IMG/VR virus record: IMGVR_UViG_3300030294_000005
Span: 62,001-126,000 of that record
Strand: one strand, 5' to 3'
Length of the DNA stretch: 64,000 bases
Position 1 is the first letter of the stretch, and every line of letters starts with the position of its first letter. Of this stretch, positions 501 through 60,799 are shown one piece after another. Both the position numbers and the translations under genes were made by a program. The notes beneath the pieces were generated by a model. That model saw only the letters and a program-made list of their open reading frames with translations, searched no databases and was not told the origin of the DNA.

Positions 501-1406
501 ATGAGTAGACAAGTGGTTATTGACTACGATGATGATAAAAAATGCAGAAGAGGTATATATGGAGAATGGGAATTAATAAAAGAATATTGTAATGATAGAG
601 CTAATGATGGTTCTATATTATCTAAATACAAATGTAAAATATGTAATAATATTATATTTGTAACTAAGCATAGAATGGATAAATCAAGACATGTATGCAA
701 AATATGTACTGAAAATTATTATAAATATAACTTTATAGGAAAAACATATAATAGATTAACTATTATAAAGTATGCATATACTGATAAAGATAGTAATCAT
801 TATTATTATTGTAAATGCTCATGTAATAATCTAATGCTAGAAACTCCAATTAGATTATCTCATTTAAAAGATGAAGATATACAATCATGTGGATGTATAA
901 GATTAGAAAAGATTAAAGAAAAATTAACAACACATGGATTATCTAATACTAGATTATATAGTATATATGATGCAATGATACGAAGATGCTATGATATTAA
1001 TAATCCAAATTATTATAGATATGGGAAAAGAGGAATTTATGTATGTAATGAATGGTTAGAAGATGATGGATTAAATAATTTTTATAATTGGGCTATTGAA
1101 AATGGCTATAGAGATGACTTGACTATAGATAGAATGGATAATGATGAAATATATGCTCCTTGGAATTGTAGATGGGCAACAAAGATTGAACAAGCAAATA
1201 ATAGAAGTAGTTGCACTTCTATAAATATAATGGGAACCAATTATACTAAAACCGAAATTTCTAGAAAATATAGTATAAATAAATATATATTAAATAAGCA
1301 TATTAATAATGGTGAGCGAATAGAAGATTTAGTAAATGCTATATGTAAATTAAAAATACCTATATCAATTAATACTAAACAAAAAGTTATCAGTTTTTAC
1401 AAGTAA
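501..1406 (+). CDS. Free-standing HNH homing endonuclease with N-terminal Cys-rich segments
   Basis: THGLSNTRLY..IY..M.RRCY, YG.RGI.VC.EW and LTIDR.DND..Y.P.NCRWAT..EQANNR are typical of phage HNH endonucleases; AGGAGG RBS upstream. Confidence 0.85.
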   Translation: MSRQVVIDYDDDKKCRRGIYGEWELIKEYCNDRANDGSILSKYKCKICNNIIFVTKHRMDKSRHVCKICTENYYKYNFIGKTYNRLTIIKYAYTDKDSNHYYYCKCSCNNLMLETPIRLSHLKDEDIQSCGCIRLEKIKEKLTTHGLSNTRLYSIYDAMIRRCYDINNPNYYRYGKRGIYVCNEWLEDDGLNNFYNWAIENGYRDDLTIDRMDNDEIYAPWNCRWATKIEQANNRSSCTSINIMGTNYTKTEISRKYSINKYILNKHINNGERIEDLVNAICKLKIPISINTKQKVISFYK

Positions 1407-1467
1407 TATTAAATGTCATTAATGTGTATAATTATAAAATATTTTATAAAGTAAATAAAATTATAAT

Positions 1468-1477
1468 TATATATTAT
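1468..1477 (+). promoter_or_regulatory. Putative early (virion-RNAP) promoter TATATATTAT
   Basis: The same motif recurs upstream of about 12 genes and resembles the phiKZ early promoter TATATTAC. Confidence 0.55.
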
Positions 1478-1539
1478 TATAATGAAAACAATAATATATT
1501 ACCAATAATAATATATTATTAGAAAAGTACTAAGACAGA

Positions 1540-1551
1540 AACATTAGTATA
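1540..1551 (+). promoter_or_regulatory. Putative late promoter AACA-N6-TA
   Basis: AACA-TTAGTA-TA just upstream of the RBS of 1580; matches the AR9 late consensus. Confidence 0.65.
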
Positions 1552-1579
1552 ATAATAAAAAAAGGGAGAGATTAAAATT

Positions 1580-2311
1580 ATGCAAAATCAAAACCAAGCT
1601 CAAGCACAGAAAACAACAACAACACCAGCCCAGGAGGAACCATTAAGTTTAGATGTAGAACCAATCAAATTTGATGGGCTAATTAAATCAAAATTAATCA
1701 CAACTATAGGTATTGGAAAATTAGTTTGGGAATTATTTAAACCAGTATTCCCAGAGTATGAAGGATGCATTATTCAGCCAGATCAATATGGCCAGTTACA
1801 AATAACTTTATACTTTAAAGATAAAGGAAAATTAACTGATACTAATGCACTTAAGGCTGTCACTCCTATTGGATTGAATCAGCATAGTAGTAGTGCTTAT
1901 GAAAAAATTGCAGCAATTAATCAGAGATTTTCTGCTAGTAAATTTGAACTTACTAAAGATGCCAAGGAAATTCTTGGAGAGTTTTATTGGGTAAGAAACA
2001 ATGGAAAAGTTCAATGGAGTCAAGTTGTAAATGAAGTTACATCTCAAGATTACAATGGTTATTCAGTTCATTTAAAAGTAACTGGATTAGACCTTACTAG
2101 AGTATTAAGAAAAATCTATGGCTTTAAAATCGATGGAGCAAGAGTTGATTATTCAGTATCTATTATAAAACCAATTGGAATGGATAATACTGGACTACTT
2201 CAGAACTACCTAATTAGCATTCAGCAGTTAGATACTAGAGAAGTTGAAAACTTGGCCAAAGAAGTTGGAGTTATCCCTATTCAGGGTTCAATCCCAATGC
2301 TTAAAAACTAG
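1580..2311 (+). CDS. Hypothetical phage protein (both promoter types upstream, own terminator)
   Basis: 243 aa ORF, GGGAGAG RBS, followed by a hairpin terminator. Confidence 0.75.
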   Translation: MQNQNQAQAQKTTTTPAQEEPLSLDVEPIKFDGLIKSKLITTIGIGKLVWELFKPVFPEYEGCIIQPDQYGQLQITLYFKDKGKLTDTNALKAVTPIGLNQHSSSAYEKIAAINQRFSASKFELTKDAKEILGEFYWVRNNGKVQWSQVVNEVTSQDYNGYSVHLKVTGLDLTRVLRKIYGFKIDGARVDYSVSIIKPIGMDNTGLLQNYLISIQQLDTREVENLAKEVGVIPIQGSIPMLKN

Positions 2312-2414: not shown

Positions 2415-2810
2415 ATGGATATAAAATATAGTATTCAAGATGGAATAGATAAATTGTTTGACGAAAAAGGAAATACTTTTTTAGCATTGAGAAAGATATC
2501 ATGGGGTGAAAGTACAAATGCTAAATATGATTTAAGAAAATGGTATATTAGCAAAGATGGAAATGGAGAAACTGTTGGAAAGGGCTTCTCATTTTTAACT
2601 GACGATGGACCATCAGAACTTACTCATGTCTTATTAGAATCTGGATTTGGAGAAACTAAAAAGATCATAGATACTATTAAAACAAGAGATGATTTTAATT
2701 CATCATTAGTTAATAGTTTAAGTAAAAAGGAACTATCCGATACTGGATTAGATATAGGGCCAGAAGAAGATGATGAAGATTTATATGATCCTTCAGCAAT
2801 ATTTGAATAA
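2415..2810 (+). CDS. PC4/YdbC-like ssDNA-binding protein
   Basis: LRKISWG...KYDLRKW...GKGFSF signature of the YdbC/PC4 fold; acidic C-terminal tail as in SSBs. Confidence 0.7.
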   Translation: MDIKYSIQDGIDKLFDEKGNTFLALRKISWGESTNAKYDLRKWYISKDGNGETVGKGFSFLTDDGPSELTHVLLESGFGETKKIIDTIKTRDDFNSSLVNSLSKKELSDTGLDIGPEEDDEDLYDPSAIFE

Positions 2811-2824: not shown

Positions 2825-3877
2825 ATGAAGATATCATTAGAGCAGTTAGTTAATACGAATTATGTAAAATATGATAAGATGATAGAAATAGTCAATGCTG
2901 TATATGCCAAATCTAATGCTTCTACAATAAATATTTATATAGATATGTACTCTATGATAAAATCACTGTACTCTAACAGAGAGTATGAAATAAATGATTA
3001 TGCAGCACTTACTGCGTGTATAATAAACATGTGTGCACACTATAGAGAATTCTTTAAAACAAGATATAAAACAAAATCAAGATTCTTTATAGTGTATTCT
3101 AAAAATTGTAGTTATATGAATAATCAATTTTATTCAGAGTATAATTATAAAAATCTAGGAATGTTCAATGCTAATAAAAAGATTGATGATATGGTAAAAA
3201 ATAATATAGAATTGTTAAAAACTTTATGTCCATACTTAGATGATATACATTTTATACCTGGAACATTTGAAACAGGAGTTATTATATATGATCTAATGTG
3301 TAGAAATGAATTGATTGATGATTCTCCACATATGATTATAACAAAAGATAAATATAATTATCAATTAGCAACGGCTAGAAACGATGTAACTATATTAAGA
3401 CCTAAAAAATCTAATGGTGAAGATATGAGTTATTCTATATCCTATAATAATCTAATATTTACTTATTATAATGAAAGAAATTTTAAAATGAAAGAACCAA
3501 ATATGTTATCTTCAGCATTAGTAAGTTTGATTATGACACTATCTTCAGTACCAGAAAGAAATATAAAATCTTTATTTAATATCTCAAGAACAATAAAGAT
3601 ATTAAATAAGGCAGTAAAAGGATTTAAGATAATAGATGGGTACAATTCTGATACAGAAGTAATATGGAATGGAATATATAATGATGATTTTAAAATAGGA
3701 TATCCTACATTTGAAAATAGATTCAAAGCAATAGATATTAGGCTTCAACACTCTATATTTATAAATACTCCAGAAGCAAAAAGTATACAGTTTAAAAATC
3801 TAGTTGATCCAGAAACAGTTAGATCAATAAATAATATGTATTTTAAAAGTACACCATTAGATTTGAATAGATTATAA
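2825..3877 (+). CDS. PIN/5'-3' exonuclease-like fold protein (divergent)
   Basis: NIYIDMYS near the N-terminus, FETGVII and IITKDK resemble FEN/T4 RNase H acidic motifs, partly degenerate. Confidence 0.4.
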   Translation: MKISLEQLVNTNYVKYDKMIEIVNAVYAKSNASTINIYIDMYSMIKSLYSNREYEINDYAALTACIINMCAHYREFFKTRYKTKSRFFIVYSKNCSYMNNQFYSEYNYKNLGMFNANKKIDDMVKNNIELLKTLCPYLDDIHFIPGTFETGVIIYDLMCRNELIDDSPHMIITKDKYNYQLATARNDVTILRPKKSNGEDMSYSISYNNLIFTYYNERNFKMKEPNMLSSALVSLIMTLSSVPERNIKSLFNISRTIKILNKAVKGFKIIDGYNSDTEVIWNGIYNDDFKIGYPTFENRFKAIDIRLQHSIFINTPEAKSIQFKNLVDPETVRSINNMYFKSTPLDLNRL

Positions 3878-3881
3878 GACA

Positions 3882-3893
3882 AACATAATAATA
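3882..3893 (+). promoter_or_regulatory. Putative late promoter AACA-N6-TA (overlaps hairpin 3890-3910)
   Basis: AACA-TAATAA-TA upstream of 3937. Confidence 0.6.
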
Positions 3894-3936
3894 GAGGATA
3901 CTCCTCTATTATTTTTTATAAAGAAGGTGTAATATT

Positions 3937-5121
3937 ATGGATGCATTCAGATATAATATAAATATGAGCTATATGTATAATAATAAAGAATATGTTATAG
4001 ACTCAACTAATATAACAAATTTTGTAATTGACTATTCATATGATACTAGAAATATGCCTATATTATTTGTAACAACATCTATAGATAAAAAAGTAGTAGA
4101 TGATATGATTAAGAATAGTAGAACAAAAACAATAATATTAACTATATCCAAGTATACAAAAGATTCATCTATAACTATTCAAAAGAATTATATACATGAT
4201 GAATTTATGTATTTCTTATCAGATGATTTAAATAATGTAGATGATTTGGATTATAGTGATAGTACTGCTAATTCAAAAGATATATATAGAAAGATAACTA
4301 TAGGAATGATAGATTTGAAATTGATGAATAATAATAAGAAATTAATAAATGAAGTATTCATTAATACAAATTTATTAGATATCGTTTTAAAAAATACATC
4401 TCATATGAATTTACTTATAGAACCTATTCCAGACTTATTAGTACCAAGATTAATTATTCCTCCATTAACTTCAATAAGTAAATATATAAAGTTCATAGAT
4501 AGTTATAATAGTTTATATCCTACAGCATATAGATTATTCTATGATTTTAATAGAACTTATTTATTAAGTTCAGCTGGTAATAATATTCCAGCAAAAGGAG
4601 AAAATATAAATTCAATAATAATAAATGTAAGCAAGAGTACTACAGCAGATTCTAAAGTACAAGGTATGCATATAGATAAACCTGGTAAAGCATATATAAT
4701 AGAATTATCTGACACTGATATAAAATGTCTAGAAGATAAAGCTACTGATATATCATATAATAAAATAATTGGAATTGCAAGTGATGGAACATATAGATCT
4801 GTAGACTTAACTCTTCAGACTCCTGTAAAAAACTCATCAGAAAAGGTTAGAATAGAAATGATGACTAATGATAATATAAAACAAGTAGATAATATAAAAG
4901 CAGATATATTAAATTCTTCAATGAGTTTATACTTTGCTAAAACAGAGTTAGACACTTCTATACTAACATTGAATAGAAAATTTATAGTAAAAAATTATGC
5001 TAGACTTTATAACAAGGATGGTGTATTTATTTTATCTTCTAAAAAAGAAATATATACTCCAGACAATGGTTCTTTTATATTAACAACTATGATAACTTTA
5101 AAAAAAGCAATAGTATCCTAG
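3937..5121 (+). CDS. Probable virion structural protein (baseplate hub-like)
   Basis: 394 aa, beta-rich composition, late promoter; function inferred from context only. Confidence 0.4.
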   Translation: MDAFRYNINMSYMYNNKEYVIDSTNITNFVIDYSYDTRNMPILFVTTSIDKKVVDDMIKNSRTKTIILTISKYTKDSSITIQKNYIHDEFMYFLSDDLNNVDDLDYSDSTANSKDIYRKITIGMIDLKLMNNNKKLINEVFINTNLLDIVLKNTSHMNLLIEPIPDLLVPRLIIPPLTSISKYIKFIDSYNSLYPTAYRLFYDFNRTYLLSSAGNNIPAKGENINSIIINVSKSTTADSKVQGMHIDKPGKAYIIELSDTDIKCLEDKATDISYNKIIGIASDGTYRSVDLTLQTPVKNSSEKVRIEMMTNDNIKQVDNIKADILNSSMSLYFAKTELDTSILTLNRKFIVKNYARLYNKDGVFILSSKKEIYTPDNGSFILTTMITLKKAIVS

Positions 5122-5141
5122 TGCAATTAAGCACTAGGATA
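5114..5141. terminator. Terminator between convergent genes
   Basis: TATCCTAGTGC-AATTAA-GCACTAGGATA with a T-tract on the + side. Confidence 0.75.
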
Positions 5142-5151
5142 TTTTTTGTTA

Positions 5152-6426
5152 TTATTTTTTATTTTTCTCTTCTGGTGCAGGATTGCTGAAAGCTTTATCT
5201 ACTACATTTTTATAATTTGTTCCAGCATCTGCTACTTTATCATTAGTAGTATCACTCTTTGGAGTTCCTACATTATCTCTTACATGATTTTTAACTATTT
5301 GCATATATTCTTTAAACATCTCTTCAGCAATAGTTTGTTTAGCTCCTAATAATCCACCACAAACATTTAGATATGTTTGTACTTTCTTTATCTGATCATC
5401 ATATGATGAAGAGTCATTCTTTACTGCTGCAGTTTGTGATTCTTTATCTTGAGGAGTTCCTTGTACATTTTTCATATTTGCCGCAGGATTATTTTCTTGC
5501 CCTCCATTATTAGAACCGCCAGCATATGATATCTGAAGCTCTTCTATATATGCTTCATATACAAATGAATAATATGATTTATTACCATATATATTAAATG
5601 ATTCATTATGCTCTCTATTTTTATTTCCAGAAGGGGTAGACTGGTTATTATTGTTATTGTTGTTATTAGACTGGTTATTATTATTTGATTGATTATTACC
5701 ACCATTATTATTTGATTGATTGTCATTACCAGTATTATCATTTGTATTAGGTGCTGGTTGAGAATTTCTTTCTCTATCAGCCTTATCAATTATATCTGCT
5801 GCATTATTAGCAGCTTTCTTAATTTCATTTAAATCTTTTTCCAATAAAGGTTTCATCTTACTTTCATAATTATAACAATAATTGAAAATATCTGTCATCT
5901 TTATCTGTGCTGATGGGAATGGTTTAGGATCTTGTCCACCTCTAAAATATAATTTACATCTATCAGCAAATGCTGCATCTGATTTAGGTATTTGGTTAAA
6001 TTTTGCTTTTTCAAATTCCTCTGGATTATCTAAAGGTAGATCATAATTAAAGATTGGAACTGCAGATGTTAGCATATTTCTTAAGCCTGTATCATAATCA
6101 TACATTGTATATGTCACATCACTACGTAGCTTTTTCTTTAATATGATATCTTTATATTTCTCAAGATAAGATCTATTACTATTAACTAAATTAGTCATAG
6201 CTTCTAAGAACTTACCCCACATTCTTCCTATAGCTTCCATAATCTTTTTAAAAGCTTCTTTTATTTTATCAGTAACTGACTCATTCAATACATCCATATT
6301 CTTTATTGTATTTTTAGATTCTCCTATTAGAACTGCTTCTTTAATAAATCTATCCATTTTAGCTTGTTCTAACATTTGATCTGCAACAAAGGATGTATAT
6401 TCAAACATATTTGAACTATATTCCAT
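5152..6426 (-). CDS. Internal head (ejection-type) protein, paralog 4, with Asn/Gln-rich insertion
   Basis: VLNE/SVTDKIKEAFKKIMEAIGRMWGKF: putative protease site followed by an amphipathic helix, as in phiKZ-like internal head proteins. Confidence 0.65.
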   Translation of the reverse strand: MEYSSNMFEYTSFVADQMLEQAKMDRFIKEAVLIGESKNTIKNMDVLNESVTDKIKEAFKKIMEAIGRMWGKFLEAMTNLVNSNRSYLEKYKDIILKKKLRSDVTYTMYDYDTGLRNMLTSAVPIFNYDLPLDNPEEFEKAKFNQIPKSDAAFADRCKLYFRGGQDPKPFPSAQIKMTDIFNYCYNYESKMKPLLEKDLNEIKKAANNAADIIDKADRERNSQPAPNTNDNTGNDNQSNNNGGNNQSNNNNQSNNNNNNNNQSTPSGNKNREHNESFNIYGNKSYYSFVYEAYIEELQISYAGGSNNGGQENNPAANMKNVQGTPQDKESQTAAVKNDSSSYDDQIKKVQTYLNVCGGLLGAKQTIAEEMFKEYMQIVKNHVRDNVGTPKSDTTNDKVADAGTNYKNVVDKAFSNPAPEEKNKK

Positions 6427-12379: not shown

Positions 12380-12577
12380 TTACTTAAAACTTATTATAGA
12401 TCTTTTCGCCCAATTTGGGGTAGGTATAAATTTATATACTCCTGGAGCTATATATATTTTTTTAGACTCAAACTCTTTTTCTAATTTATCATACTTCTCC
12501 TTTTCTTTTAATTTCTGAGCCTCTTCATATTGTTTTACAACTCCAAAATAATCTTGTCCTGTGTACATACCATACAT
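12380..12577 (-). CDS. Small hypothetical protein ending KRSIISFK
   Basis: GGGGG RBS; AACA-N6-TA at 12591-12602 and early motif at 12679-12688 upstream. Confidence 0.65.
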   Translation of the reverse strand: MYGMYTGQDYFGVVKQYEEAQKLKEKEKYDKLEKEFESKKIYIAPGVYKFIPTPNWAKRSIISFK

Positions 12578-18588: not shown

Positions 18589-18593
18589 AATTT

Positions 18594-43987: not shown

Positions 43988-44007
43988 CTCTTTAATTTTA
44001 TTATATT

Positions 44008-44051: not shown

Positions 44052-44055
44052 GAAC

Positions 44056-44077
44056 TAGGAGGGCATATGCCCTCCTA
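44056..44077 (-). terminator. Perfect 22-bp palindrome / terminator
   Basis: TAGGAGGGCATATGCCCTCCTA with a T-tract on the minus strand. Confidence 0.75.
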
Positions 44078-44359: not shown

Positions 44360-44384
44360 CCCATATATTATAATTTACTCATAT

Positions 44385-44696
44385 TTAATTACAAGTTGGT
44401 AATAATTCACCTTTATAATCTATTAGACCAAATTGATTATTTAATTTTCCTACTGCTATTCCATCTTTAAAATTATCAATATGATCATATTCACATGGTA
44501 TTATTTCTTTTCCAGTTCTATCAATAGCCCCATTTTTACCATTAAGAGTTACTATTGCTATACTCTCACTAAAATCATCTATATAATCATATTTTAATGG
44601 AACTATTTCATTACCCTCTTTATCAATTAATCCATACTTATTATCTGTTTGTACTATTGCTACCTTTCCTGAAAACTTTCTAATTTGATCATACAT
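44385..44696 (-). CDS. WG (KWG Leptospira-type) repeat protein
   Basis: Repeats of KYGLIDK.G.EIVP.KYD.I..F.E..A.V; early motif at 44733-44742. Confidence 0.85.
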   Translation of the reverse strand: MYDQIRKFSGKVAIVQTDNKYGLIDKEGNEIVPLKYDYIDDFSESIAIVTLNGKNGAIDRTGKEIIPCEYDHIDNFKDGIAVGKLNNQFGLIDYKGELLPTCN

Positions 44697-44759
44697 TATA
44701 TAACCCCCTATAATAATTTTATATTCATTATTATAATATATAATTGTAAATATTTATAC

Positions 44760-45986
44760 TTACTTATCTTTATTTTCTATTACTTCATCTACAGGTTCTC
44801 CTATAACTTCATCTATATTATATTCTTCTTTCTCATAAGTACGTTTATATTCAGGAGTTAATGTGTCATACATAGACTTACCTAAAACTAAATTTATAAT
44901 AGGTTCTACTGTTTCTTGTATTTCCATAGCTAATATTCTTATTTCAGCTTGAGCATGAATATCTGTTCTCAATGCTAGGAATGCTATTAATGATTTAAAT
45001 GTAAATGTCATATATAATGACGTTTGGGCATTGTTTGGTAAGTATGCTCTAGCATCTTCTGGTATTAATCTATTTTCACCTAATGATTTATCATTTAATT
45101 GATTATAGATTTTCATAAGTTCATCGCCTAATTCTTGTAATGTTAACTCACTTGTTGAACCATTAAATCCTATATTATATTTATAATTTACATCATATTT
45201 ATCTTTATATTTATCAGGGGAATTGAATCCAAACTTTTCCGCACAATAATCTACATATCTTTGTGATAGTTGGGTTATTCCATTTCTATGTCTATCTACT
45301 TGTTGAGATATAATTCTTGATATATCTTTAAATAATATAGTGATAGAGCAGAAGTCTAATAAATCTTCTAATGAAAATATCTTATTAGTTTCATTATAGA
45401 TATACATGATATCATCCATGTTTACAATAGAGACGTTGGCACTTAATACTTTATTATTAAAAACAGCTGGATAAGTACAATCTAAATCTATAAATTTAGA
45501 TTCTGACATTATTTCATCTTCTATAAAATCATTTAAATATTCCTTATTAATATTATAGAGATTATTTAATATGATTTTTGCAATAGAATTATCTTGATTA
45601 TCTATATTTCTAAAGATATGTTTATATCCTCTTATAGAACCTCCAATAAGAAAATGTATTTCTTTTCCTATATATTTTATTTTTATATTTAAATATTTAC
45701 ATAGAGTTTCTATTTCTGCTAACTCTATTAGATTTTCTATGTCTAATTGTAATATAAGATATATTACTATATTAGAATGCTCTAGAATTGATTCATGCCC
45801 AGTTGCTACTCTTCTTTTTATATAATCTAATTTAGCTTGTATTCCTACCTCTCCATCTTTGTCATAGCATATTTTACATGCATCATGTATGATATCAATA
45901 TGATTATTAGAATATATGAATTTATCATATACTCCTTTGGTAAATAGTTTATGTTTTTTAATTAGTGATGATAATAATTTCTTCAT
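44760..45986 (-). CDS. thyX: FAD-dependent thymidylate synthase (extended, tandem-type)
   Basis: GHESILEH, ISR.ISQQ.DRHR....QLSQRYV, EDARAYLPN and LR...HAQAEIR.LA; late-type promoter at 46016-46027. Confidence 0.9.
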   Translation of the reverse strand: MKKLLSSLIKKHKLFTKGVYDKFIYSNNHIDIIHDACKICYDKDGEVGIQAKLDYIKRRVATGHESILEHSNIVIYLILQLDIENLIELAEIETLCKYLNIKIKYIGKEIHFLIGGSIRGYKHIFRNIDNQDNSIAKIILNNLYNINKEYLNDFIEDEIMSESKFIDLDCTYPAVFNNKVLSANVSIVNMDDIMYIYNETNKIFSLEDLLDFCSITILFKDISRIISQQVDRHRNGITQLSQRYVDYCAEKFGFNSPDKYKDKYDVNYKYNIGFNGSTSELTLQELGDELMKIYNQLNDKSLGENRLIPEDARAYLPNNAQTSLYMTFTFKSLIAFLALRTDIHAQAEIRILAMEIQETVEPIINLVLGKSMYDTLTPEYKRTYEKEEYNIDEVIGEPVDEVIENKDK

Positions 45987-46289
45987 ATTAATTAATCCCC
46001 TTCCCTTTATATATTTATTAATCTGTTATAATTTATATATATTAATAATATACTCTAAGGATTTTGAATTTTATCAGAATTTAAATACCCTACTATGTCT
46101 TGTTTATAATATCAATATCTTATAATTAATATTTATAATTTTATTATTATAATATTTAATCATAATTTAAATTTTATAGTTATAGTTGATTAATTTTTTA
46201 TTTAAAAAAAATATAATTAAAATAATTATTTTGATGTTATGTATGAAATTTTTTTTAATTTAGAAAAAATAATATAGTAGGAAACCCTA

Positions 46290-46748
46290 CTATATTGTAC
46301 TATATTCTTCATGAAATATTTTATAACTATAATGCTTAATAATATTTAACTTATTATTTAGTGATAAATCTTCAAAATTATTTAATTTGCAACAATTTAC
46401 ACATTTAATAATATTATCTTTTTTATCAAGTGTATGATGACCACCAGATTCACATTCACAATATTTATATAATAACATCTTAACCATATCATTTACATTC
46501 TTCTGTTGTGCAAATTCATTTGTCTTTGTATTCAGAAATCTATATGTATTACTATTACATCTATCACCATAATATTTTTCACTCTCATGTACTATAATAT
46601 ATGCTATTCCTTTATCATTATAGTATAATTTAACATTTCCTATATCCTTAGATGTGGGAGTGATTAGATTTAATCTCTTTTTCATTATATCAAAATTTTC
46701 TATCTCGTCTCCATCAATCTCTTGGAATATTCCTATTATCTTATTCAT
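46290..46748 (-). CDS. Hypothetical early protein with Cys cluster (CECE...CVNC)
   Basis: AGGAG RBS, early motif at 46791-46800, terminator at 46272-46295. Confidence 0.6.
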   Translation of the reverse strand: MNKIIGIFQEIDGDEIENFDIMKKRLNLITPTSKDIGNVKLYYNDKGIAYIIVHESEKYYGDRCNSNTYRFLNTKTNEFAQQKNVNDMVKMLLYKYCECESGGHHTLDKKDNIIKCVNCCKLNNFEDLSLNNKLNIIKHYSYKIFHEEYSTI

Positions 46749-46834
46749 CTTAATATCTCCTTTTTAATTATATTAATTTTATTCATTGTTATAATATATA
46801 ATTAAAATTAATAAGATATGCAAATGACAAAATC

Positions 46835-46918
46835 CCGCCAGTGGAAATCAATCCACTGGCGAGTATGCAATAAAGGAAAACATAAAGAGTAGAAGAACAA
46901 AGCGTTTAAATTATAGTT
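46835..46918 (-). ncRNA. Candidate small RNA (AACT-N6-TA promoter, about 75 nt, GC-rich hairpin)
   Basis: Promoter-like motif at 46907-46918, no ORF, ends at CGCCAGTGGA-loop-TCCACTGGCG plus a T-tract. Confidence 0.35.
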
Positions 46919-46921
46919 ATA

Positions 46922-47036
46922 AAAATATATAATGATTCCTTTCAGAATCATTATATATATGATAAAATTTTAGGAGAGCTTTAAAAAAATGAAATATTAA
47001 TTACTATGGATAATTAAAAAGATTTACTATATAGTT
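46922..47036 (-). ncRNA. Candidate small RNA containing anti-SD CUCUCCU
   Basis: AACT-N6-TA at 47025-47036, no ORF, ends at hairpin 46925-46959 plus TTTTT. Confidence 0.3.
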
Positions 47037-47745
47037 AATTAAAATAATTATTTAATATGGTTAATATATTAGAAAATATAGTATCTTTATCAAATATATT
47101 TGATACTATAGTACCAGCCATATCATGGGATTCATAACATTTAACTATGTTCCATGATAATTTATTACATACATACTCATGATTAGCATCTAACTCTAAT
47201 TGATATTTTTTATTAGATTCATGTAAATCATTAATTATACCATCCTTAGAATCTCTATTATATAAATTTTTAAAATTCAATTCTACTGGGATATACATAA
47301 ATAATACAATATCTTCTTTATGAAGTTGATTCTTTCCATATTCTAAATCTATACACCAATCTATAAACTTATCTTTTTCTTCACTGATATTATATCTTGT
47401 AGATTGATACATTATATTAGATCCTACATAACGATCCATTATAATAGTATATCCATCTTTTAATAATTTATCAATATTTATCTTATCATTATATCTATTC
47501 AGAGCATAGAATAATGATATAGTATGTGGATCAATATCATATAATTTACCATAATCTCCTTTTAAATATTTTTTTACAAATATTGAAGAATTATTGTTAT
47601 AAGTTGGATATGATATTAATATAGTTTTACTATTCCAATGATTTCTAATATATTCAGTTAGTAGTTTAGCATTGGTTTCTTTAAAGCATCCATCTAATCC
47701 TTCAAGAGTTATCATTTTTCCTTTAATATTTTCTCTAGTTATCAT
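47035..47745 (-). CDS. tmk: Thymidylate (dTMP) kinase
   Basis: ITLEGLDGCFKET P-loop, LFYALNR, IIMDRYVGSN.MYQ and D.HES. Confidence 0.85.
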   Translation of the reverse strand: MITRENIKGKMITLEGLDGCFKETNAKLLTEYIRNHWNSKTILISYPTYNNNSSIFVKKYLKGDYGKLYDIDPHTISLFYALNRYNDKINIDKLLKDGYTIIMDRYVGSNIMYQSTRYNISEEKDKFIDWCIDLEYGKNQLHKEDIVLFMYIPVELNFKNLYNRDSKDGIINDLHESNKKYQLELDANHEYVCNKLSWNIVKCYESHDMAGTIVSNIFDKDTIFSNILTILNNYFN

Positions 47746-51447: not shown

Positions 51448-52224
51448 ATGCGTGATCCATTAGGACTAATGGAAGCTGAAACAAAAGATCAACCATTTTC
51501 TGTAATAAAATTAGATAGTATACCAGATTTTGATATTGAAGATTATGATTTAATGGATTCAAAAGAATTTCAAAAATTTTTATATTCAATAGAAAATATT
51601 GCTAGAGTATCGTTTGAATATAGAGCTATAATAGCATATCTAAGAGAAAATATGGATATGAATAAATGTAGTGTTTTCGAAAATATAAATAATATAGATA
51701 CTACAAAAGTTAAAATAGAAATTCATCATCATCCATTTTCATTATATGATATAACTATTATTGTATATAATAAGAGGTTATATAATAGAGAATCTATAGA
51801 TGAAGAATTAGTTGCAAAAGAAGTTATGTATTTACATTATGCACTACTAATTGGATTAATACCATTATCAGAAACTGTTCATGAATTAGTTCATAATCAA
51901 TATCTATTTATACCAAATAGTAATGTTATGGGAAAATATGAAGAATTCTATAATATGTATAAAGATTTTATGACTCCAGAGAATATAGATATATATGAAA
52001 GAACTGTTGCTTTTAGTAATTCATATGATGAATCTAAACAAAATCATATATTAGATAAAAGCTATATTTATGTAGATTTAACTGGTTCTTATGACATTCC
52101 TACTTATCAAAGTGTAATAGATTCAATGAGTCATAAAATAAAAGAATTAAAATCTAGTAATAATGTAGATATGACGTTTGAATTACCAAAAAAGAAGAGA
52201 GTTATAAGTTTCTTAGATAAATAA
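51448..52224 (+). CDS. HNH-fold protein (late)
   Basis: KC...IEIHHHP...LIPLSETVHELVH; AACA-N6-TA at 51419-51430. Confidence 0.55.
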   Translation: MRDPLGLMEAETKDQPFSVIKLDSIPDFDIEDYDLMDSKEFQKFLYSIENIARVSFEYRAIIAYLRENMDMNKCSVFENINNIDTTKVKIEIHHHPFSLYDITIIVYNKRLYNRESIDEELVAKEVMYLHYALLIGLIPLSETVHELVHNQYLFIPNSNVMGKYEEFYNMYKDFMTPENIDIYERTVAFSNSYDESKQNHILDKSYIYVDLTGSYDIPTYQSVIDSMSHKIKELKSSNNVDMTFELPKKKRVISFLDK

Positions 52225-53483: not shown

Positions 53484-53770
53484 AATTAAAAAAAGCTATA
53501 AAAATTATTAGTGAGATTAGAGATTTAAAAGATAATTGGAATGGATATGGAGCCAAACCTATATCTAAAGGTGTAATTAATAGAGCATTACAGTTAGTAG
53601 TATTAATGAAACCTCTTCCAGATATGATATGTCCTACCGCTAACAATTCTATTCAATTTGAATGGGAAAATAAATTATTATATCTTGAAATAGAAATATT
53701 TAGTGATAAGATAGAATTGTTTAATACATGTACAAAAAATGAATCACTGTGTATAGGAGGAGATTTATAA
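53480..53770 (+). CDS. Hypothetical protein
   Basis: L.DNWNGYGA.PI and IQFEW motifs; overlaps both neighbours. Confidence 0.65.
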   Translation: MKLKKAIKIISEIRDLKDNWNGYGAKPISKGVINRALQLVVLMKPLPDMICPTANNSIQFEWENKLLYLEIEIFSDKIELFNTCTKNESLCIGGDL

Positions 53771-54327
53771 TGCATATTTTTTTCGATACTGAATTTACAG
53801 GACTTCATCAAAATACTACACTAATAAGCATAGGATTGATATCAGAAGATGGTAAAAGTTTCTATGCTGAATTTAGTGATTATGATAGAAGTCAATGTGA
53901 TGAATGGATAAATGAAAATATTTTAGCAAATTTATCTAAGAATGTTAATGAACTCTCATCTATAGCTGATATAAATGTAGATGGGGATAAAGAAGAGATT
54001 AAGAATGAATTATTAAAATGGATGTCTCAATTTGATATAATTGAATGGGTTGCAGATGTTTGTCATTATGATTTTATGTTATTAATAAATTTATTATATG
54101 GAGAAGCACTTAATATGCCAAGCGATAGATTCTGTGCAGCATGTCATGATATAAATCAAGATATTGCTTCATATTATAAAATATCAGAAATTGAGGCTTT
54201 TAATATGTCAAGAGAAGCTATTGTAATAGATTTTAATGATAATATTGGAGGTACTAAACATAATGCATTATATGATGCATTTGTAGCCAAATCTATATAT
54301 GATGGTATAGTTGCTAGAATAGGATAA
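53770..54327 (+). CDS. DEDDh 3'-5' exonuclease
   Basis: FFDTEFTGL, LISIGL, YDF and HNALYDA. Confidence 0.85.
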   Translation: MHIFFDTEFTGLHQNTTLISIGLISEDGKSFYAEFSDYDRSQCDEWINENILANLSKNVNELSSIADINVDGDKEEIKNELLKWMSQFDIIEWVADVCHYDFMLLINLLYGEALNMPSDRFCAACHDINQDIASYYKISEIEAFNMSREAIVIDFNDNIGGTKHNALYDAFVAKSIYDGIVARIG

Positions 54328-54749: not shown

Positions 54750-55007
54750 ATGATAAATAATAAATTACCCAATCCTAATTATAAAGAACGTATTAGGAGA
54801 ATTGCAGGAGCTAATGTAAAAACCTCAGAGAATATGGACAAATGGCCTGATGATGTAGTTTATACCATATATTCTAATGAGGTTTTAGAAACGTTACCAG
54901 TTATTATTTTGGAACAAATGAGAAATCATATACAAAGTGTTATAGATAAAGCTATAATTATGAAGGTGGAAGATACAAATATAGAGAAGAAGGATAGATT
55001 AAAATGA
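54750..55007 (+). CDS. Hypothetical early protein
   Basis: AAGGAG RBS; early motif at 54708-54717. Confidence 0.6.
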   Translation: MINNKLPNPNYKERIRRIAGANVKTSENMDKWPDDVVYTIYSNEVLETLPVIILEQMRNHIQSVIDKAIIMKVEDTNIEKKDRLK

Positions 55008-55684
55008 ATAAATTGACAATAGATAATATCTTAAAAAATAGTATATGTATCTTTGTAGATGCATCTATATTAAATACTGAAAAAAGTTTTATAGGATGCC
55101 CAGGGTGCTTAATAGTTAATGGTGAGCAAATATCTTATAGTGATTATATAAGATTAGATTCAACAAATAGTAGATCAGAATTAGCTGCTGTGCAATTAGG
55201 AGTGACTCAAGCATTAAATTATATTAATTCAGGAGTGCCAATTAATTTATTTTCAGATTCTAAAGTATGCATATATTCAATTAGAGAATGGATTTTTAAT
55301 TGGTGTAATAATATTGTAGATGGTGTTCTATATGGATCATCATATAAACCAATAAGTAATCAGGATATGATAATAAATATAATAAATACTATACGATTTA
55401 ATAATCTACATATAAATTTATATCATCAAAAAGGGCATGTAGATATTTTCAATAAACATTCATTAGAACATGCTAGAGAGGTCTTTATAGAATCTAATAA
55501 GGTTGATATAGAATATGATCTATTAAAATATATATCAGATTATAATAATAATGTAGATATACAAACAAAAATGAAATTAGAACATTGTAATGGACAAAAT
55601 AGAAAGTTAGTTAATCCAATAAGATTTTCGCTAGATGGATTCGATAAATACAAATATAGAGAATTGGTAAGGAGGGATTTATAA
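55004..55684 (+). CDS. rnhA: Ribonuclease HI
   Basis: IFVDAS, TNSRSEL.A, FSDS..C, NQD, HQKGH and N..VD RNase H motifs. Confidence 0.8.
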   Translation: MNKLTIDNILKNSICIFVDASILNTEKSFIGCPGCLIVNGEQISYSDYIRLDSTNSRSELAAVQLGVTQALNYINSGVPINLFSDSKVCIYSIREWIFNWCNNIVDGVLYGSSYKPISNQDMIINIINTIRFNNLHINLYHQKGHVDIFNKHSLEHAREVFIESNKVDIEYDLLKYISDYNNNVDIQTKMKLEHCNGQNRKLVNPIRFSLDGFDKYKYRELVRRDL

Positions 55685-56314: not shown

Positions 56315-56908
56315 ATGCTTGAAAATTTAAAAAGAAGAGAAAAACAATCAGTTATTTCATTCGATACACTGTATAATGGATATGGTGAAAAACAAGAAGT
56401 TGAGACATTATATAATAAGTATAATGCATTATATTCAAATGATGATATAATAAAATTACCAAAAACATCACTTGATATAGTAAATAGAAGAATGATGCTA
56501 GAAGGATTATTTCGTAATAGAGTAGGATTTCTATTACTGAATACTATTAGTCATCATGATGAATTTAGATATACTAGTATAGATACACTAGAAAAGAAGT
56601 TCCCATTTGTATTTAATATTCATAATTTTATGACTGATATATCCAATAGTACATTATTAGACTATTCTACTTTAATATGTAGTACACTTTATAATAATAT
56701 GCTAAAAGATTATGATGATCATAATCTAAACATAACTAGTCAAAAAGAAGATCTTTCAAAAATATTAATAAATGATATTTTTAATATGTTAAATATTGTA
56801 TATAAAGAAGCTAATACAATATATTTAGATGCTGGTATCCCAGGATATAATTTAAATGAAGGAATTAATTTAAATGAGGAGATTAATAATGGACTCTTCG
56901 ACATCTGA
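56315..56908 (+). CDS. Hypothetical protein
   Basis: TAGGAG RBS. Confidence 0.65.
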   Translation: MLENLKRREKQSVISFDTLYNGYGEKQEVETLYNKYNALYSNDDIIKLPKTSLDIVNRRMMLEGLFRNRVGFLLLNTISHHDEFRYTSIDTLEKKFPFVFNIHNFMTDISNSTLLDYSTLICSTLYNNMLKDYDDHNLNITSQKEDLSKILINDIFNMLNIVYKEANTIYLDAGIPGYNLNEGINLNEEINNGLFDI

Positions 56909-57410
56909 GTTAATGTTTTCTAGTGAATCGAATACTTGGGAAACCCCGATCCAATTTTTCAATAGATTAAATCTAGAATTTAATTTTAATTTGGATGTAT
57001 GCTCATTTCCAGAGACTGCTAAATGTAAAAATTATTTTACACCATCAGACGATGGATTAAGTAAAGACTGGGGATTAAATACTTGTTGGATGAATCCACC
57101 ATACGATCAATGTGCATTATGGATGGAGAAAGCATATCATGAAGCAATTAAGGGAGCTACGGTTGTAGCTCTCATTCCAAGTCGTACAGATACAAGATAT
57201 TTTGATGATTATTGTATGAAAGCTTCTGAAATTAGATTTGTTAAAGGAAGATTAAAATTTGGTAATTCAAAAAATTGTGCTCCATTTCCAAGTATGATAG
57301 TTATATTTAATTATTATAATTGGGATAGGTATATACACATTAGTACTTATAATAAAAATAGATTAAAGTTATTAAGGATGGAAAAATTTAATGTTATAAA
57401 ATTTGTATAG
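56889..57410 (+). CDS. Phage DNA N6-adenine methyltransferase (Dam_phage type)
   Basis: WETP, LDVC, DGL..DW, WMNPPY, LIP.RTDT and IRF.KGRLKF. Confidence 0.9.
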   Translation: MDSSTSELMFSSESNTWETPIQFFNRLNLEFNFNLDVCSFPETAKCKNYFTPSDDGLSKDWGLNTCWMNPPYDQCALWMEKAYHEAIKGATVVALIPSRTDTRYFDDYCMKASEIRFVKGRLKFGNSKNCAPFPSMIVIFNYYNWDRYIHISTYNKNRLKLLRMEKFNVIKFV

Positions 57411-57427: not shown

Positions 57428-57850
57428 ATGATTATTATGGAAAAATGTTTAAGTTGTACTGCTATGACAGGTGATCTATATTGTTTATTAGATGGGGAAC
57501 TAAAAGATGAAATACAATTAAATATGCCTCAATCAGAATGTGAAGTTAATAATGCATATAAAAAAGATAGAATGGCTGACTTTAGAAAAATTAAAATAAT
57601 ACCAAGATCTGAATCATCTTGTACAAAAGAAAAGGTTATATCATTTAATTCAGAAGTATCTATGGAAGATAGTGATATAATATATAAAGCACATTTATCT
57701 AGAGATAAGAATATATTATCATTAGAGTTTGAAGGAGATGTAGTCCCCTATCCTGTATTATCTAAAAAATCTTTTACTATAAGATTAGAAATACCAGAAG
57801 AGGAAGTAGGATGTGGAGAATGTGATACTTGTATAACCCCTATATGCTAA
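57428..57850 (+). CDS. Hypothetical Cys-rich protein
   Basis: CxxC at the N-terminus and CGECDTC at the C-terminus. Confidence 0.6.
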   Translation: MIIMEKCLSCTAMTGDLYCLLDGELKDEIQLNMPQSECEVNNAYKKDRMADFRKIKIIPRSESSCTKEKVISFNSEVSMEDSDIIYKAHLSRDKNILSLEFEGDVVPYPVLSKKSFTIRLEIPEEEVGCGECDTCITPIC

Positions 57851-57932: not shown

Positions 57933-58694
57933 TTGCTTAATGACTACTATTCTCCTATTAATAATATGCCTAATAATGGATATGGAATTCAACCAAATCC
58001 GATAGGAAATATTTTGAATATAGGGCAGCAAGGTTATAATGGTGGATATTATAATAATACTTATAATAATTATTATAATCCTTATCTTGCCATAAAAAAT
58101 CATGAATTAATGCAAACACAATTAAGAGAAGAACAAAGAGTTCAATCTTCAATGATGATGATGATAAGTAAAGCTGTAAATAAAGCAGCTGGACAAGAAA
58201 TGCCAAATGAAAGATTAGAAGAGTTGTATGGATATAAAGATCCAGAACGCTATGTTCCTAAGCCAGATAGTATGGAATATGAACAGAATTTAATAGTTGG
58301 AATGTATTTAAATGAAAGTAATTATTTACCACAAGATATTCAATATATAAATTATTTTAATTCAATGTATGATACTGCTAAACAAGAATGTCCAGACAAT
58401 ATTTCAATGTATGATTATAATCAAAAGATGTCAGAGAAGTATGTAAAAATGCTTGTTGATATTGATAAAGAGAAACAAAAAGATGTAAGTAAATTATACA
58501 ATAACAAAGATTATAATAAACTATTAGATATGAATTCTAATGGAAGCAGTTATTTTAATAGTATATTCAATGGAGCAAATGGTAATAGCAATGTATCTAT
58601 AGATGATATGGAAGTTACATTACCAGCTCATTTATCAAATGAATATCAATCAAGAAGAAAACAATTCTTAGATGCAATACTAAATAAGAAATAG
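57933..58694 (+). CDS. Protein with N/Y/G/Q-rich prion-like N-terminus
   Basis: First 50 or so aa: NNMPNNGYGIQPNP...GQQGYNGGYYNNTYNNYYNPY; TTG start after GGAGG. Confidence 0.7.
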   Translation: MLNDYYSPINNMPNNGYGIQPNPIGNILNIGQQGYNGGYYNNTYNNYYNPYLAIKNHELMQTQLREEQRVQSSMMMMISKAVNKAAGQEMPNERLEELYGYKDPERYVPKPDSMEYEQNLIVGMYLNESNYLPQDIQYINYFNSMYDTAKQECPDNISMYDYNQKMSEKYVKMLVDIDKEKQKDVSKLYNNKDYNKLLDMNSNGSSYFNSIFNGANGNSNVSIDDMEVTLPAHLSNEYQSRRKQFLDAILNKK

Positions 58695-58709
58695 AAAGGG
58701 TGAATAATC

Positions 58710-59579
58710 TTGGCTAAAGCAGATATACTTAACATATTATATTCTAAAGATCGTTCACCTTTAGAATTTCATTTTGATTCTTTAGTAATGCCAACTATGC
58801 TATGTTATTTATCACCTCAAGATATACAAGCATTATATAATATAGCATCATCTATCAAGTACAGTTCTAAGATAAATTTAAAATATAAAGAGATAGATAA
58901 CATTATGGTTAATAGAGGATTCAAGAAGTTTCATTCAGGAACTAATAGAATTGTTTATAGTTATTTAGAAGATAGATCATTTTTAGTAAAGATTGCTATA
59001 GATAGAGTTGGATTACGAGATAATCCAGATGAATTTAGCAATCAATTTTTATTAAAACCTTTTGTTACAAGAACATTCGAAGTTAGTCCATGTGGCACTA
59101 TAGCCACAGTTGAAAGAGTAGAACCTATAACAAGCAGACAAGAGTTTATAAGTATAGCTGGAGATGTATTTGATTTATTAAATAAACAAATACTAGGTGA
59201 ATATATCTTAGAAGATATAGGAACTAATTATTTTATGAATTATGGATTAAGAAGTGGATTTGGTCCAGTACTATTGGATTATCCATACTTATTTAAACTT
59301 GATGGAAATAAATTATATTGTAATCAAGTATTAGAAACAGGCCATTTATGTGAAGGATTAATAGACTATGATGCAGGATTTAACAATTTGATATGTTCAA
59401 AATGTGGAAAAAGATATCTTGCAACAGAATTACAAAAGGCTAAGGATAATAAATTAATATTCATGAAGGGTAGTAATGAAATTAATTTAAATATAAAACT
59501 AAAACGAGGTGACAAAATAGTAAAGGATCTTACTAACGATAAAGAAACTGAAACTATTATGTTCAAAAAGAAAGGATGA
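58710..59579 (+). CDS. Atypical protein kinase-fold protein with C-terminal Zn ribbon
   Basis: SGTNR.VY (Gly loop), LVKIA (VAIK Lys), N..E (helix C), EDI....MNYG (catalytic loop), VLLDY (DFG-equivalent), then C..C...CSKC. Confidence 0.65.
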   Translation: MAKADILNILYSKDRSPLEFHFDSLVMPTMLCYLSPQDIQALYNIASSIKYSSKINLKYKEIDNIMVNRGFKKFHSGTNRIVYSYLEDRSFLVKIAIDRVGLRDNPDEFSNQFLLKPFVTRTFEVSPCGTIATVERVEPITSRQEFISIAGDVFDLLNKQILGEYILEDIGTNYFMNYGLRSGFGPVLLDYPYLFKLDGNKLYCNQVLETGHLCEGLIDYDAGFNNLICSKCGKRYLATELQKAKDNKLIFMKGSNEINLNIKLKRGDKIVKDLTNDKETETIMFKKKG

Positions 59580-59585
59580 TTAAAA

Positions 59586-60131
59586 ATGATAATGGTATTA
59601 AAAAGAGGAAATAATGTAGTTAATAATGTACCACAGGTTGCTATTGATGAAGAAATTAATGAAGAGAAAAGTTATTCAAATGTATTAAATGTAAAAGTCA
59701 ATAAAAAACCAGGAATACCTAATCGTATTCCTAGCGAGTCAGATGATAGAATAAATCAAGGTATACTAGAGGAAGAGCATAAAGACTTTAAATTTAATAC
59801 AGCATCTAATTTTATACCAACTCCAACTACTAAAAATAGTGCAGAAAATGCACTTGGAGCTTATGGATTAAGTGATAAAGATTTTGAAGAAGAAGAAACA
59901 TCTGCTCCAAAAATAGTAGATAAATATTCTAATATAAATAAAAAAGATGCAGGTATATTATATAAAAATTCAGTGCCTGTAGATAATGTAAAAGCTGGTG
60001 ATGTTAAATCAGAAGATGTAGAAACTAAAGATGAAATATCAATAGAAGAAAAATATGCTGATCTTGCAAACCCAGAAGATTATGATAGTGTTCAGAAAAT
60101 ACAAAGACGAAAAAATATAGAACAATATTAA
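59586..60131 (+). CDS. Probably disordered acidic protein
   Basis: Low hydrophobicity, rich in E/D/K/N/S/T/P. Confidence 0.65.
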   Translation: MIMVLKRGNNVVNNVPQVAIDEEINEEKSYSNVLNVKVNKKPGIPNRIPSESDDRINQGILEEEHKDFKFNTASNFIPTPTTKNSAENALGAYGLSDKDFEEEETSAPKIVDKYSNINKKDAGILYKNSVPVDNVKAGDVKSEDVETKDEISIEEKYADLANPEDYDSVQKIQRRKNIEQY

Positions 60132-60145
60132 AATAAAAAGGATGC

Positions 60146-60799
60146 GTGATGAAAATGTTTAAAGGAACATTATTTATAACAACAGATGTAAATATATTAC
60201 AGCAATTAGTATATAATAATAAAGTAATTATTATTGGAGAACCAGATCCAGCAATGATTAATGCATTAAATGCTGTAGTTGGGAGTATATTACTTCCTCC
60301 ATATTTAGCTATGATGGCACAGATGGATGGAAATATTAATGAATTTTATAATCAATACTATCTACATCTATATACAAAAGAGCCACAAGAGTTTATAGCT
60401 ACAATATTAAAAGCTTTAACCCTTGGAAAAAATATAGTTATGTATTGTACTGAAGATGAATTTAAATTATGCGGTCAATTCTTATTACAATTCTTACAGA
60501 AAGATTTTGGGATAGTAGTAGGAACGCAAAACAATCAATTCTATTTTGATCCAGCATATACACCTACAGTAACTACATTACTATATATAAATGATCTAGT
60601 TACTGCAGATGAATTATTTATGTTGTATCCAGATACTATTCCAATCAATGATATAATATTACCAAAACTAGTTCAAGAACTTCATCCAGTTGTAGATGAA
60701 CAAACTAAAGATTCATATTTGAAATATTTTGGCGATTTAAATCATAGGGTTAAATTAAATCATAAATTTAGAAAGTCCCCAATATCAATGGGGATGTAA
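60146..60799 (+). CDS. Hypothetical protein, DUF488-like pattern (paralog A)
   Basis: LLPP...F...Y..HL.......I...L..GKNIVMYC. Confidence 0.45.
   Translation: MMKMFKGTLFITTDVNILQQLVYNNKVIIIGEPDPAMINALNAVVGSILLPPYLAMMAQMDGNINEFYNQYYLHLYTKEPQEFIATILKALTLGKNIVMYCTEDEFKLCGQFLLQFLQKDFGIVVGTQNNQFYFDPAYTPTVTTLLYINDLVTADELFMLYPDTIPINDIILPKLVQELHPVVDEQTKDSYLKYFGDLNHRVKLNHKFRKSPISMGM

Follow-up and report, generated by a model that had tools for sequence, protein, structure and literature searches.

A short peptide tag, with a core of five residues, recurs at the ends of otherwise unrelated proteins encoded in a 64,000-nucleotide stretch of DNA (the window) from an uncultured jumbo phage, which spans bases 62,001-126,000 of the 236,184-bp IMG/VR virus record IMGVR_UViG_3300030294_000005 (about 26% G+C). 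The tag is real and selected at the protein level, it marks a constant set of proteins over nine phage lineages, and the whole set of tags switches sequence in concert from one lineage to another. We tentatively favour the view that the tag is a short docking motif on disordered terminal extensions, binding one co-evolving phage receptor, a DNA-associated hub similar to a clamp toolbelt, and regard this as possible rather than probable. Docking to a receptor, the receptor itself and the site of action are what we infer from the patterns described below.

The initial annotation of the window, made from the sequence alone, had pointed to a recurrent terminal motif in unrelated proteins. All the peptides that it quoted are present at the open reading frames (ORFs) concerned, and the recurrence is stronger than it had supposed. 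In the home genome, hereafter G000, 286 ORFs were called with a simple codon-usage caller, whose calls are crude, and within-protein shuffles of this whole proteome, rich in I, K, N and F, served as the null. The pattern [KR]x0-1[VI]ISF was observed 13 times, compared with 0.79±0.87 in the shuffles (maximum 4, z = 14), and VISF 12 times versus 1.1; the regular expression of the initial annotation itself gave 11 matches versus 2.2±1.4. When the terminal zone was defined as at most 25 residues from the N-terminus or 45 from the C-terminus, the looser pattern [VIPAT]I[SRKD]F occurred 33 times in this zone (7.1±2.6 shuffled) and 21 times in the interior (16.6±4.0 shuffled, i.e. no excess). Since the terminal count is far above the composition-matched shuffles and the interior count is at expectation, the excess is purely terminal. 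At the DNA level, the 13 strict sites are spelled with differing codons, namely AGT, AGC, TCA, TCT and TCG for serine, GTT, GTC and GTA for valine, and ATA, ATT and ATC for isoleucine. The use of both serine codon families indicates that the constraint is exerted on the peptide and not on the DNA.

The consensus of the tag in G000 is [KR]-x-[VIP]-I-[SRK]-F-[VLN]. Its core is composed of two adjacent hydrophobic residues, a variable residue, a specificity residue and usually another hydrophobic one, with a K or R usually just before. A common register can be drawn over the lineages compared below, hydrophobic-hydrophobic-x-[K/R/F/I]-hydrophobic, again usually with a preceding basic residue. The tag is found at either protein end, outside the catalytic domains and beyond the segments alignable to homologues from Bacillus phage AR9. 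Most carriers have one copy, and several copies are present in the N- and C-subunits of the DNA polymerase, in the beta-C subunit of the non-virion RNA polymerase and in a superfamily 2 (SF2) helicase. In the one case that was modelled with AlphaFold, a protein encoded next to the polymerase, the tag segment has a predicted local distance difference test score (pLDDT) below 50. The window contains the following carriers and candidates, together with one untagged protein that serves as an internal negative control:

501-1406 (+), HNH endonuclease (phrog_374), C-terminal KQKVISFYK, tag codons 1386-1397
12380-12577 (-), 65-residue protein with no family match, ends AKRSIISFK, tag codons 12386-12397
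34793-34966 (-), 57-residue micro-ORF, candidate copy KIRPIIFYD
36537-41780 (+), virion RNA polymerase beta subunit (AR9 g189 homologue), untagged control
51448-52224 (+), AR9 g242 homologue (phrog_12252), ends KKKRVISFLDK, tag codons 52201-52212
55004-55684 (+), RNase HI (PF00075, residues 12-148), NPIRFS 18 residues from the end, codons 55616-55627
56315-56908 (+), 197-residue protein with no family match, N-terminal EKQSVISFD at residue 13, codons 56351-56362
56874-57410 (+), Dam-type DNA N6-adenine methyltransferase (PF05869), ends NVIKFV, codons 57393-57404
57428-57850 (+), 140-residue cysteine-rich protein, TKEKVISFN at residue 70, between its two halves, codons 57635-57646
60146-60799 (+), 217-residue conserved protein, ends RKSPISMGM, codons 60779-60790

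Two paralogues of the HNH endonuclease elsewhere in G000 likewise end in tags, PIRFIE and ISIISFAKKEEQ. The cysteine-rich protein holds the sole non-terminal strict copy of the window, and no orthologue of it was found in the other genomes. None was found for the micro-ORF either, whose position weight matrix score of 8.3 is below the shuffle null. Two other resemblances were rejected: VIDF of the exonuclease at 53749-54327, located inside a conserved domain, is probably not a tag, and PIKF of the protein at 1580-2311 is not one, its F being invariant across all lineages.

The N-subunit of the split B-family DNA polymerase of G000 shares 31% identity with its counterpart in Bacillus phage AR9/PBS1 and has more distant matches in Staphylococcus phage S6, MarsHill and Yersinia phiR1-37. 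Both multisubunit RNA polymerases of AR9, virion and non-virion, have homologues in G000. Through the polymerase, 42 related IMG/VR contigs were reached (44-100% identity), and megablast with the first 20 kb of the window found no near-identical phage record. From the related metagenomic genomes, five complete ones were retrieved first (G001-G005) and four more later (G006-G009) for an out-of-sample test; G006-G008 are incomplete and G009 (IMGVR_UViG_3300031867_000002) is complete. Orthologues were defined as reciprocal best hits, and protein identities were assigned by family scans and by mapping onto the annotated AR9 genome.

Comparison of these genomes revealed that orthologues in eight other lineages keep the tag at the same termini, each lineage with its own sequence: LFxKI, MCxIV, FMxR, IWxK, KPF, AFS or GMxY. 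The terminal tails are therefore conserved among relatives, and, taken together with the enrichment, the kept termini support the proposal of the initial annotation that the motif is a phage-specific docking or localisation tag. For instance, the C-terminus of the DnaB-like helicase reads AIRFVS in G000, LIRLFQKIS in G001, KVMCTIVPR in G002, KKFMTRVPA in G003, RDVIFMHKKE in G005, RAFSYIA in G007 and IRGMIYE in G008. The polymerase tails of the relatives similarly carry two or three short tandem repeats, spaced by about 12 residues and different in sequence in every lineage. In the g242 homologue, residues 13-206 align to AR9 and the tag lies outside them; its orthologues carry FMVR (G003), IMCVIV (G002), KIWFV (G004), KVIHF (G005), KPFT (G006) and AFSYI (G007). 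In G001, the tag of this protein, RLFTKI, is at the N-terminus instead of the C-terminus; since it has moved from one end to the other, the position of the tag appears flexible but terminal. The RNase H orthologues have weaker lineage-like copies in their tails (LFKS in G001, KVAINY in G005). The orthologues of the 217-residue protein end in PLFTKMEV, EMVKVVEK, NIWRV, QKPFVRGV and NAFSTIV, that is, in the tag of their own lineage, which indicates that SPISM of the window protein is a genuine degenerate tag. On the other hand, the virion RNA polymerase beta subunit bears the own-lineage tag in none of the 8 lineages that have an orthologue.

The lineage tags were also recovered blindly. A 4-mer scan placed FMTR, FMVR and FMKR on top in G003 (9, 6 and 7 proteins, respectively, versus about 0.2 expected) and EMVK on top in G002. 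When the 16 residues at each protein end were scanned for over-represented patterns, the top rank went to FM.R in G003 (22 proteins, p = 1e-14), to MC..V in G002 and to F.KIE in G001, where LFTK was found as well; KIW emerged more weakly in G004. In G000, a family of tandem paralogues contributed N-terminal patterns that outranked ISF and K.ISF. A motif-by-proteome matrix has 33, 21, 16, 27, 6 and 10 terminal hits on its diagonal and mostly 0-8 off it. In a prospective test, motifs were fixed from the polymerase tails alone and then counted in the four newly obtained genomes. They were borne out in three of the four: [KR]PF[IV] in G006 (13 terminal hits, 0.3±0.6 shuffled), AF[SI] in G007 (22 hits, 3.1±1.7 shuffled) and GM.Y in G008 (20 hits, 0.6±0.7 shuffled). 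Blind discovery in the new genomes returned RPF.Y/KPF, KAFS and GM.Y as top patterns. Collectively, these data show a concerted switch of the tag set between lineages. At least eight complete rewritings of the set have taken place among phages that still share about 50% identity in their polymerases.

The system has limits in its distribution. In G009, the polymerase tail is devoid of tandem repeats, SbcD starts directly at its catalytic domain, and the motif GLF is found at a few termini only (DnaB, beta'-C); the tag system of this genome may be either reduced or ancestral. In AR9, MarsHill, phiR1-37 and BpSp, the polymerase N-subunit ends right after the conserved region, with no tail, and AR9 has no comparable terminal motif. 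Judging from these polymerase tails, the tag system seems to have arisen within the uncultured clade.

To describe the client set across the genome, we list the tagged proteins of G000 besides those of the window:

DNA polymerase N-subunit, tail VVLRFIN / KVISFN / RIIDFN, three tags 12 residues apart
DNA polymerase C-subunit, two copies in an insertion
Non-virion RNA polymerase beta-C, three to five copies
Non-virion RNA polymerase beta-N and beta'-C
DnaB-like helicase, at the C-terminus given above
SF2 helicase, two copies
SbcD nuclease, starts MRKVISF
NAD-ligase, in an N-terminal extension
HNH endonucleases, two families
Several small proteins of no assigned function
199275-200210 of G000 (-), polymerase-adjacent 311-residue protein, N-terminal tag

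The client set is constant over the nine lineages. In most of them, the tag is present on beta-C, beta-N and beta'-C of the non-virion RNA polymerase, the DNA polymerase N-subunit, DnaB, the SF2 helicase, SbcD and the g242 homologue. Untagged in all nine are the four virion RNA polymerase subunits and the non-virion beta'-N, then GyrA, GyrB, UvsX, primase, RecD, SbcC and GroEL, the major capsid protein, portal, sheath and terminase, as well as an SSB-like protein and a low-complexity zinc-ribbon protein. In G003, about one tenth of the proteome is tagged. The client set (polymerase, ligase, RNase H, methylase, Mre11-type nuclease, helicases, late transcription) resembles the clients of a sliding clamp rather than everything that touches DNA. 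Next to the polymerase gene, in a conserved divergent arrangement, lies the gene of the 311-residue protein. In the AlphaFold model, its product comprises a long coiled coil, a small beta domain at the C-terminus and a disordered tail that bears the tag and KRGRP, an AT-hook-like element; this protein may be an accessory subunit of the polymerase.

Two HNH_3/NUMOD4 endonucleases of G000 start with MKIISF or MYRPITF, and four paralogues in G003 with MKSFMIR, MNVFMQR, MNQFMYR and MKTFMTR, always on an N-terminal extension outside the homologous domain. Since the same endonuclease family bears each genome's own tag, these selfish elements have adopted the resident one.

Some proteins display tail motifs of a different kind. 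The SSB-like core protein (G000 19138-19911) has an acidic C-terminal tip whose type is conserved across lineages (LNDIEDQIN, LDDLESELE, YDDIENQFE) and which is like the partner-binding tails of SSB or gp32. In the window, 2415-2810 (+) encodes a 131-residue acidic protein, syntenic with 1580-2311 in all lineages, whose tail motif [FY][FY]DP is conserved across lineages and not lineage-specific. The DnaB-like helicase g007 of AR9 (3583-5268) ends in DSGIPF, resembling the bacterial SSB C-terminal tip DDDIPF.

According to the reading we favour, every copy of the tag would dock on a single receptor, encoded by the phage and probably oligomeric, located on the replicating phage DNA or around it. 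Such a hub would bring together the replisome, the late (non-virion) RNA polymerase and the enzymes of nick processing, repair and modification on a common platform, in the way of PIP-box or clamp-binding peptides and of T4 gp45, which couples replication to late transcription. Resident homing endonucleases would have acquired the tag to reach their DNA substrate. Tag and receptor pocket would co-evolve, hence each lineage would have rewritten the whole set, and this rewriting could also exclude the tagged enzymes of co-infecting relatives. We favour a clamp-like hub because the clients match those of a clamp plus late transcription, as in T4, because gyrase, UvsX and primase are consistently untagged, and because the sister family uses an RNase H-clamp fusion for the same problem (PMC13648698). 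Furthermore, a set that is rewritten per lineage is as expected of a peptide co-evolving with one receptor.

The PIP-box has the consensus Q-x-x-[ILM]-x-x-[FY]-[FY], and the bacterial beta-clamp motif QL[SD]LF or QLxLxL binds DnaN. The tag is similar to PIP-box/APIM and beta-clamp motifs in being a short hydrophobic peptide in disordered terminal tails of unrelated DNA enzymes, and the clients overlap (polymerase, ligase, RNase H, methyltransferase, Mre11-type nuclease, helicases, endonucleases). However, the tag lacks the conserved Q of the PIP-box, its hydrophobic-to-aromatic spacing is one residue shorter, its sequence is other than QL[SD]LF/QLxLxL, and, unlike these motifs, it reaches three to five copies per protein; moreover, no clamp gene was detected in the phage by sequence or profile. 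PIP-box and clamp motifs are kept across the domains of life, whereas the tag is rewritten between phages as close as those compared here. The host clamp is disfavoured as the receptor, since a universal motif would not explain lineage-specific rewriting. In T4, where gp45 has gp43, gp33 and gp55 as clients, DNA polymerase and late transcription likewise share a terminal hydrophobic peptide. Here, in contrast, the tags are on core subunits of the RNA polymerase instead of sigma factors or co-activators, copies at the N-terminus are common, helicases, methylase and homing endonucleases are tagged too, and no gp45 or clamp-loader homologue was detected.

Another parallel comes from the Chimalliviridae, in which RNase H is fused to a clamp-derived domain (Rhc) that serves the split DNA polymerase and late transcription, the link being made by gene fusion and a folded interface with the polymerase C-subunit (PMC13648698, preprint of October 2026). 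The home phage has its split B-family polymerase and multisubunit RNA polymerases in common with this sister group, but its RNase H comprises 226 residues with a tag and has no detectable clamp domain. A 2021 comparative analysis described these polymerases as being without a classical clamp. Encapsulin and microcompartment peptides and nuclear localisation signals also share features with the tag: a short terminal peptide at either end of unrelated enzymes, transferable in principle, with a basic flank. In contrast to compartment peptides, no shell protein is known in this clade and some DNA enzymes are untagged; in contrast to encapsulin cargo peptides, the proteins packaged in the virion form the untagged class, and the tagged RNA polymerase is the non-virion one.

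Several searches were directed at the receptor. The phage has no match to the DnaN/beta-clamp family (PF00712), none to the gp45 family (PF02916) at E ≤ 10 and no detected clamp-loader homologue. Sequence searches of five genomes at E ≤ 10 gave no match to chimallin (phiKZ gp54) or PicA/Imp1 (gp69). As a single sequence, phiKZ Rhc matched only via its RNase H domain, and a profile of its clamp domain matched neither by hidden Markov model search nor by hhalign against 81 orthogroup alignments. The polymerase-adjacent 311-residue protein was ruled out as a clamp by its AlphaFold model, being a tagged client instead. The initial annotation had proposed the protein at 1580-2311 (+) of the window as a receptor candidate. 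Among the core proteins, this one evolves fastest (20-32% identity between lineages); its N-terminus is disordered and rich in Q and N, and no homologue was found in AR9 or G009. Its AlphaFold model (predicted template modelling score, pTM, 0.62) has no significant neighbour in the PDB and no PCNA-like match (best Foldseek E-value 0.025, best VIA Z-score 4.5), so that the candidacy gains no support.

Another protein, of 273 residues (G000 166552-167373), is located in the replication module between SbcD/DnaB and gyrase in all tag-bearing lineages. It combines a CxH...CxxC zinc-ribbon and a helical core with low-complexity arms rich in Q, G, Y, P and M, which resemble an SSB linker or a prion-like domain, and it is possible that it acts as a scaffold. 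Complex prediction of the polymerase tail with 1580, with the zinc-ribbon domain of this protein and with G000 189816 scored 0.00, which is no evidence either way. Ranking of receptor candidates by their identity pattern across lineages gave no clear signal. In a phyletic contrast with AR9 and G009, 61536 and 63580 were the sole candidates missing from both, the tag status of G009 being ambiguous, and classification of candidates by early promoters was too noisy to use. ESM Atlas look-ups for three candidates added no information.

The initial annotation had offered two analogies, clamp binding and import into a compartment, and these are not distinguishable since no receptor was found. The second, the main rival of the hub, would make of the tag a targeting or partition signal for entry to, or retention in, a selective non-chimallin compartment or condensate, with the gate or scaffold as receptor. 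It would be a transplantable zip code for a replication-transcription compartment, tag and gate being re-keyed per lineage and shielding the DNA from the nucleases and homing endonucleases of relatives; we consider both forms of this proposal conceivable but doubtful. In its favour, the tagged proteins need access to phage DNA, selfish homing endonucleases and a methylase without a replisome role among them, while virion and cytoplasmic proteins are untagged; the tagged share of the G003 proteome, about 10%, is on the scale of a nuclear proteome. Multiple copies would suit avidity for a lattice or condensate, the low-complexity zinc-ribbon protein is at hand in the replication module of every tag-bearing lineage, and lineage-specific rewriting would provide subcellular isolation from co-infecting relatives. 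However, GyrA, GyrB, UvsX, primase, RecD and SbcC act on DNA and yet are untagged in nine lineages, and neither chimallin nor PicA/Imp1 has a homologue detectable by sequence searches. A 2026 review describes AR9-like phages as being without chimallin, and chimallivirus phage-nucleus import as relying on surface patches rather than on linear or terminal signals (PMC13282480). The complex prediction with the zinc-ribbon domain provided no answer, and there is no direct evidence of any compartment in this uncultured clade. A docking hub is itself confronted with several facts. Clamp clients normally bear one motif and not three 12 residues apart, and by our estimate a spacing of 12 residues would not span the distance between pockets in a PCNA-type ring. 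Replicative DnaB and the many small proteins of no assigned function are not typical clamp clients, one tenth of the G003 proteome is a large number for a clamp, and no receptor was found despite the clamp, chimallin, PicA/Imp1 and Rhc searches. G009 failed the prospective test, with 0 terminal hits and at most a sparse GLF motif. Finally, the gene calls are crude, and the regular expressions for G001, G002, G004 and G005 were refined after inspection of the data, the signals of G004 and G005 being weaker; the blind scans and the prospective test are independent of these refined expressions.

The tags could also act without any separate receptor, as beta-strand stickers pairing with each other, in which case multi-tag proteins would be the scaffolds and single-tag proteins the clients of a self-assembling factory. 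This would agree with the beta-prone, hydrophobic character of the pentapeptides, with the fixed 12-residue spacing of the three polymerase-tail copies on turn-like N/D/G/K-rich linkers in every lineage, and with several searches that found no receptor. It is nevertheless unlikely: specificity residues that hardly vary (F, M and R in G003, I and F in G000) suggest recognition by a pocket rather than generic strand pairing, evolving a concerted switch of self-pairing in over 20 proteins is more difficult than drifting against a pocket that tolerates change, and five residues are very short for a stable zipper. Slightly less likely still is a protease or chaperone signal, i.e. a degron or folding tag timing the removal or maturation of early and middle enzymes. 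The terminal position, basic flank and hydrophobic core resemble ClpX N- and C-motifs and Hsp70-binding sites, the clade encodes GroEL and zincin-type proteases, and the tagged proteins are non-virion enzymes. But such a signal is missing from gyrase, UvsX and primase in the same gene neighbourhoods, its acquisition by homing endonucleases and the three polymerase copies kept in every lineage would be left unexplained, and AR9 has the same chaperone and proteases with no tags. As for an absence of function, by chance in an I/K/F-rich proteome, by a DNA signal read in frame or by paralogy, we give it hardly any credence. The low G+C content and the I/K/N/F-rich proteome would favour chance matches, and some loose matches are noise, as seen from the interior count at expectation, PIKF of 1580 and VIDF of the exonuclease. 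Nonetheless, composition is ruled out as a source by the within-protein shuffles (z = 14) together with the lack of interior enrichment, a DNA-level motif by the differing codons from both serine families, and paralogy by carriers from unrelated families; the concerted lineage switch and the three out-of-sample predictions that held, out of four, speak against it as well. A small part of our expectation is left for mechanisms not listed here.

To our knowledge, proteome-wide short linear motifs, well known in eukaryotes, have hardly been described in phages. New here is that the enzymes of replication, repair, modification and late transcription which bear the pentapeptide form a fixed set, and the lineages offer a natural experiment in motif-receptor co-evolution and orthogonality. 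No tag of such a kind is described in the literature found (including PMC7824862, PMC13282480, PMC13648698 and PMC12619734). A docking hub predicts an undiscovered organising protein in phages of the phiKZ/AR9 type, a group known to be without a canonical sliding clamp, and lineage-matched versus mismatched tag peptides used as bait would be a handle for finding it. Should the tag prove to be a zip code instead, a signal for import into a phage replication compartment, or for partition to it, would for the first time be defined in sequence. The tag also accounts for the odd terminal extensions on homing endonucleases in these genomes and could supply orthogonal five-residue recruitment tags for synthetic biology. 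As an annotation rule, a terminal tag would mark small uncharacterised proteins as DNA-transaction machinery.

Some observations concern the genome at large. Two tandem paralogue arrays lie outside the window (G000 41365-47305 and 58219-61226), one encoding WG-repeat proteins (KWGFIN) and the other five genes whose products start with MKIILVKE; these arrays explain the other top-ranked k-mers, KWGF and MKIILVKE. In the window, 22337-33085 (-) is a 3,582-residue ORF, unusually long even among jumbo phages, a short segment of which is 34% identical to the AR9 tape measure protein g204. Upstream of genes, in the intergenic regions of the window as in the rest of the genome, there is an enrichment of the AR9 early-promoter core TATATTAT (within ATATATTATA), and ATATATTAT occurs in 49 upstream regions of G000 versus 9.7 expected. 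This suggests that the promoter of the virion RNA polymerase is conserved between AR9 and the tag-bearing clade.

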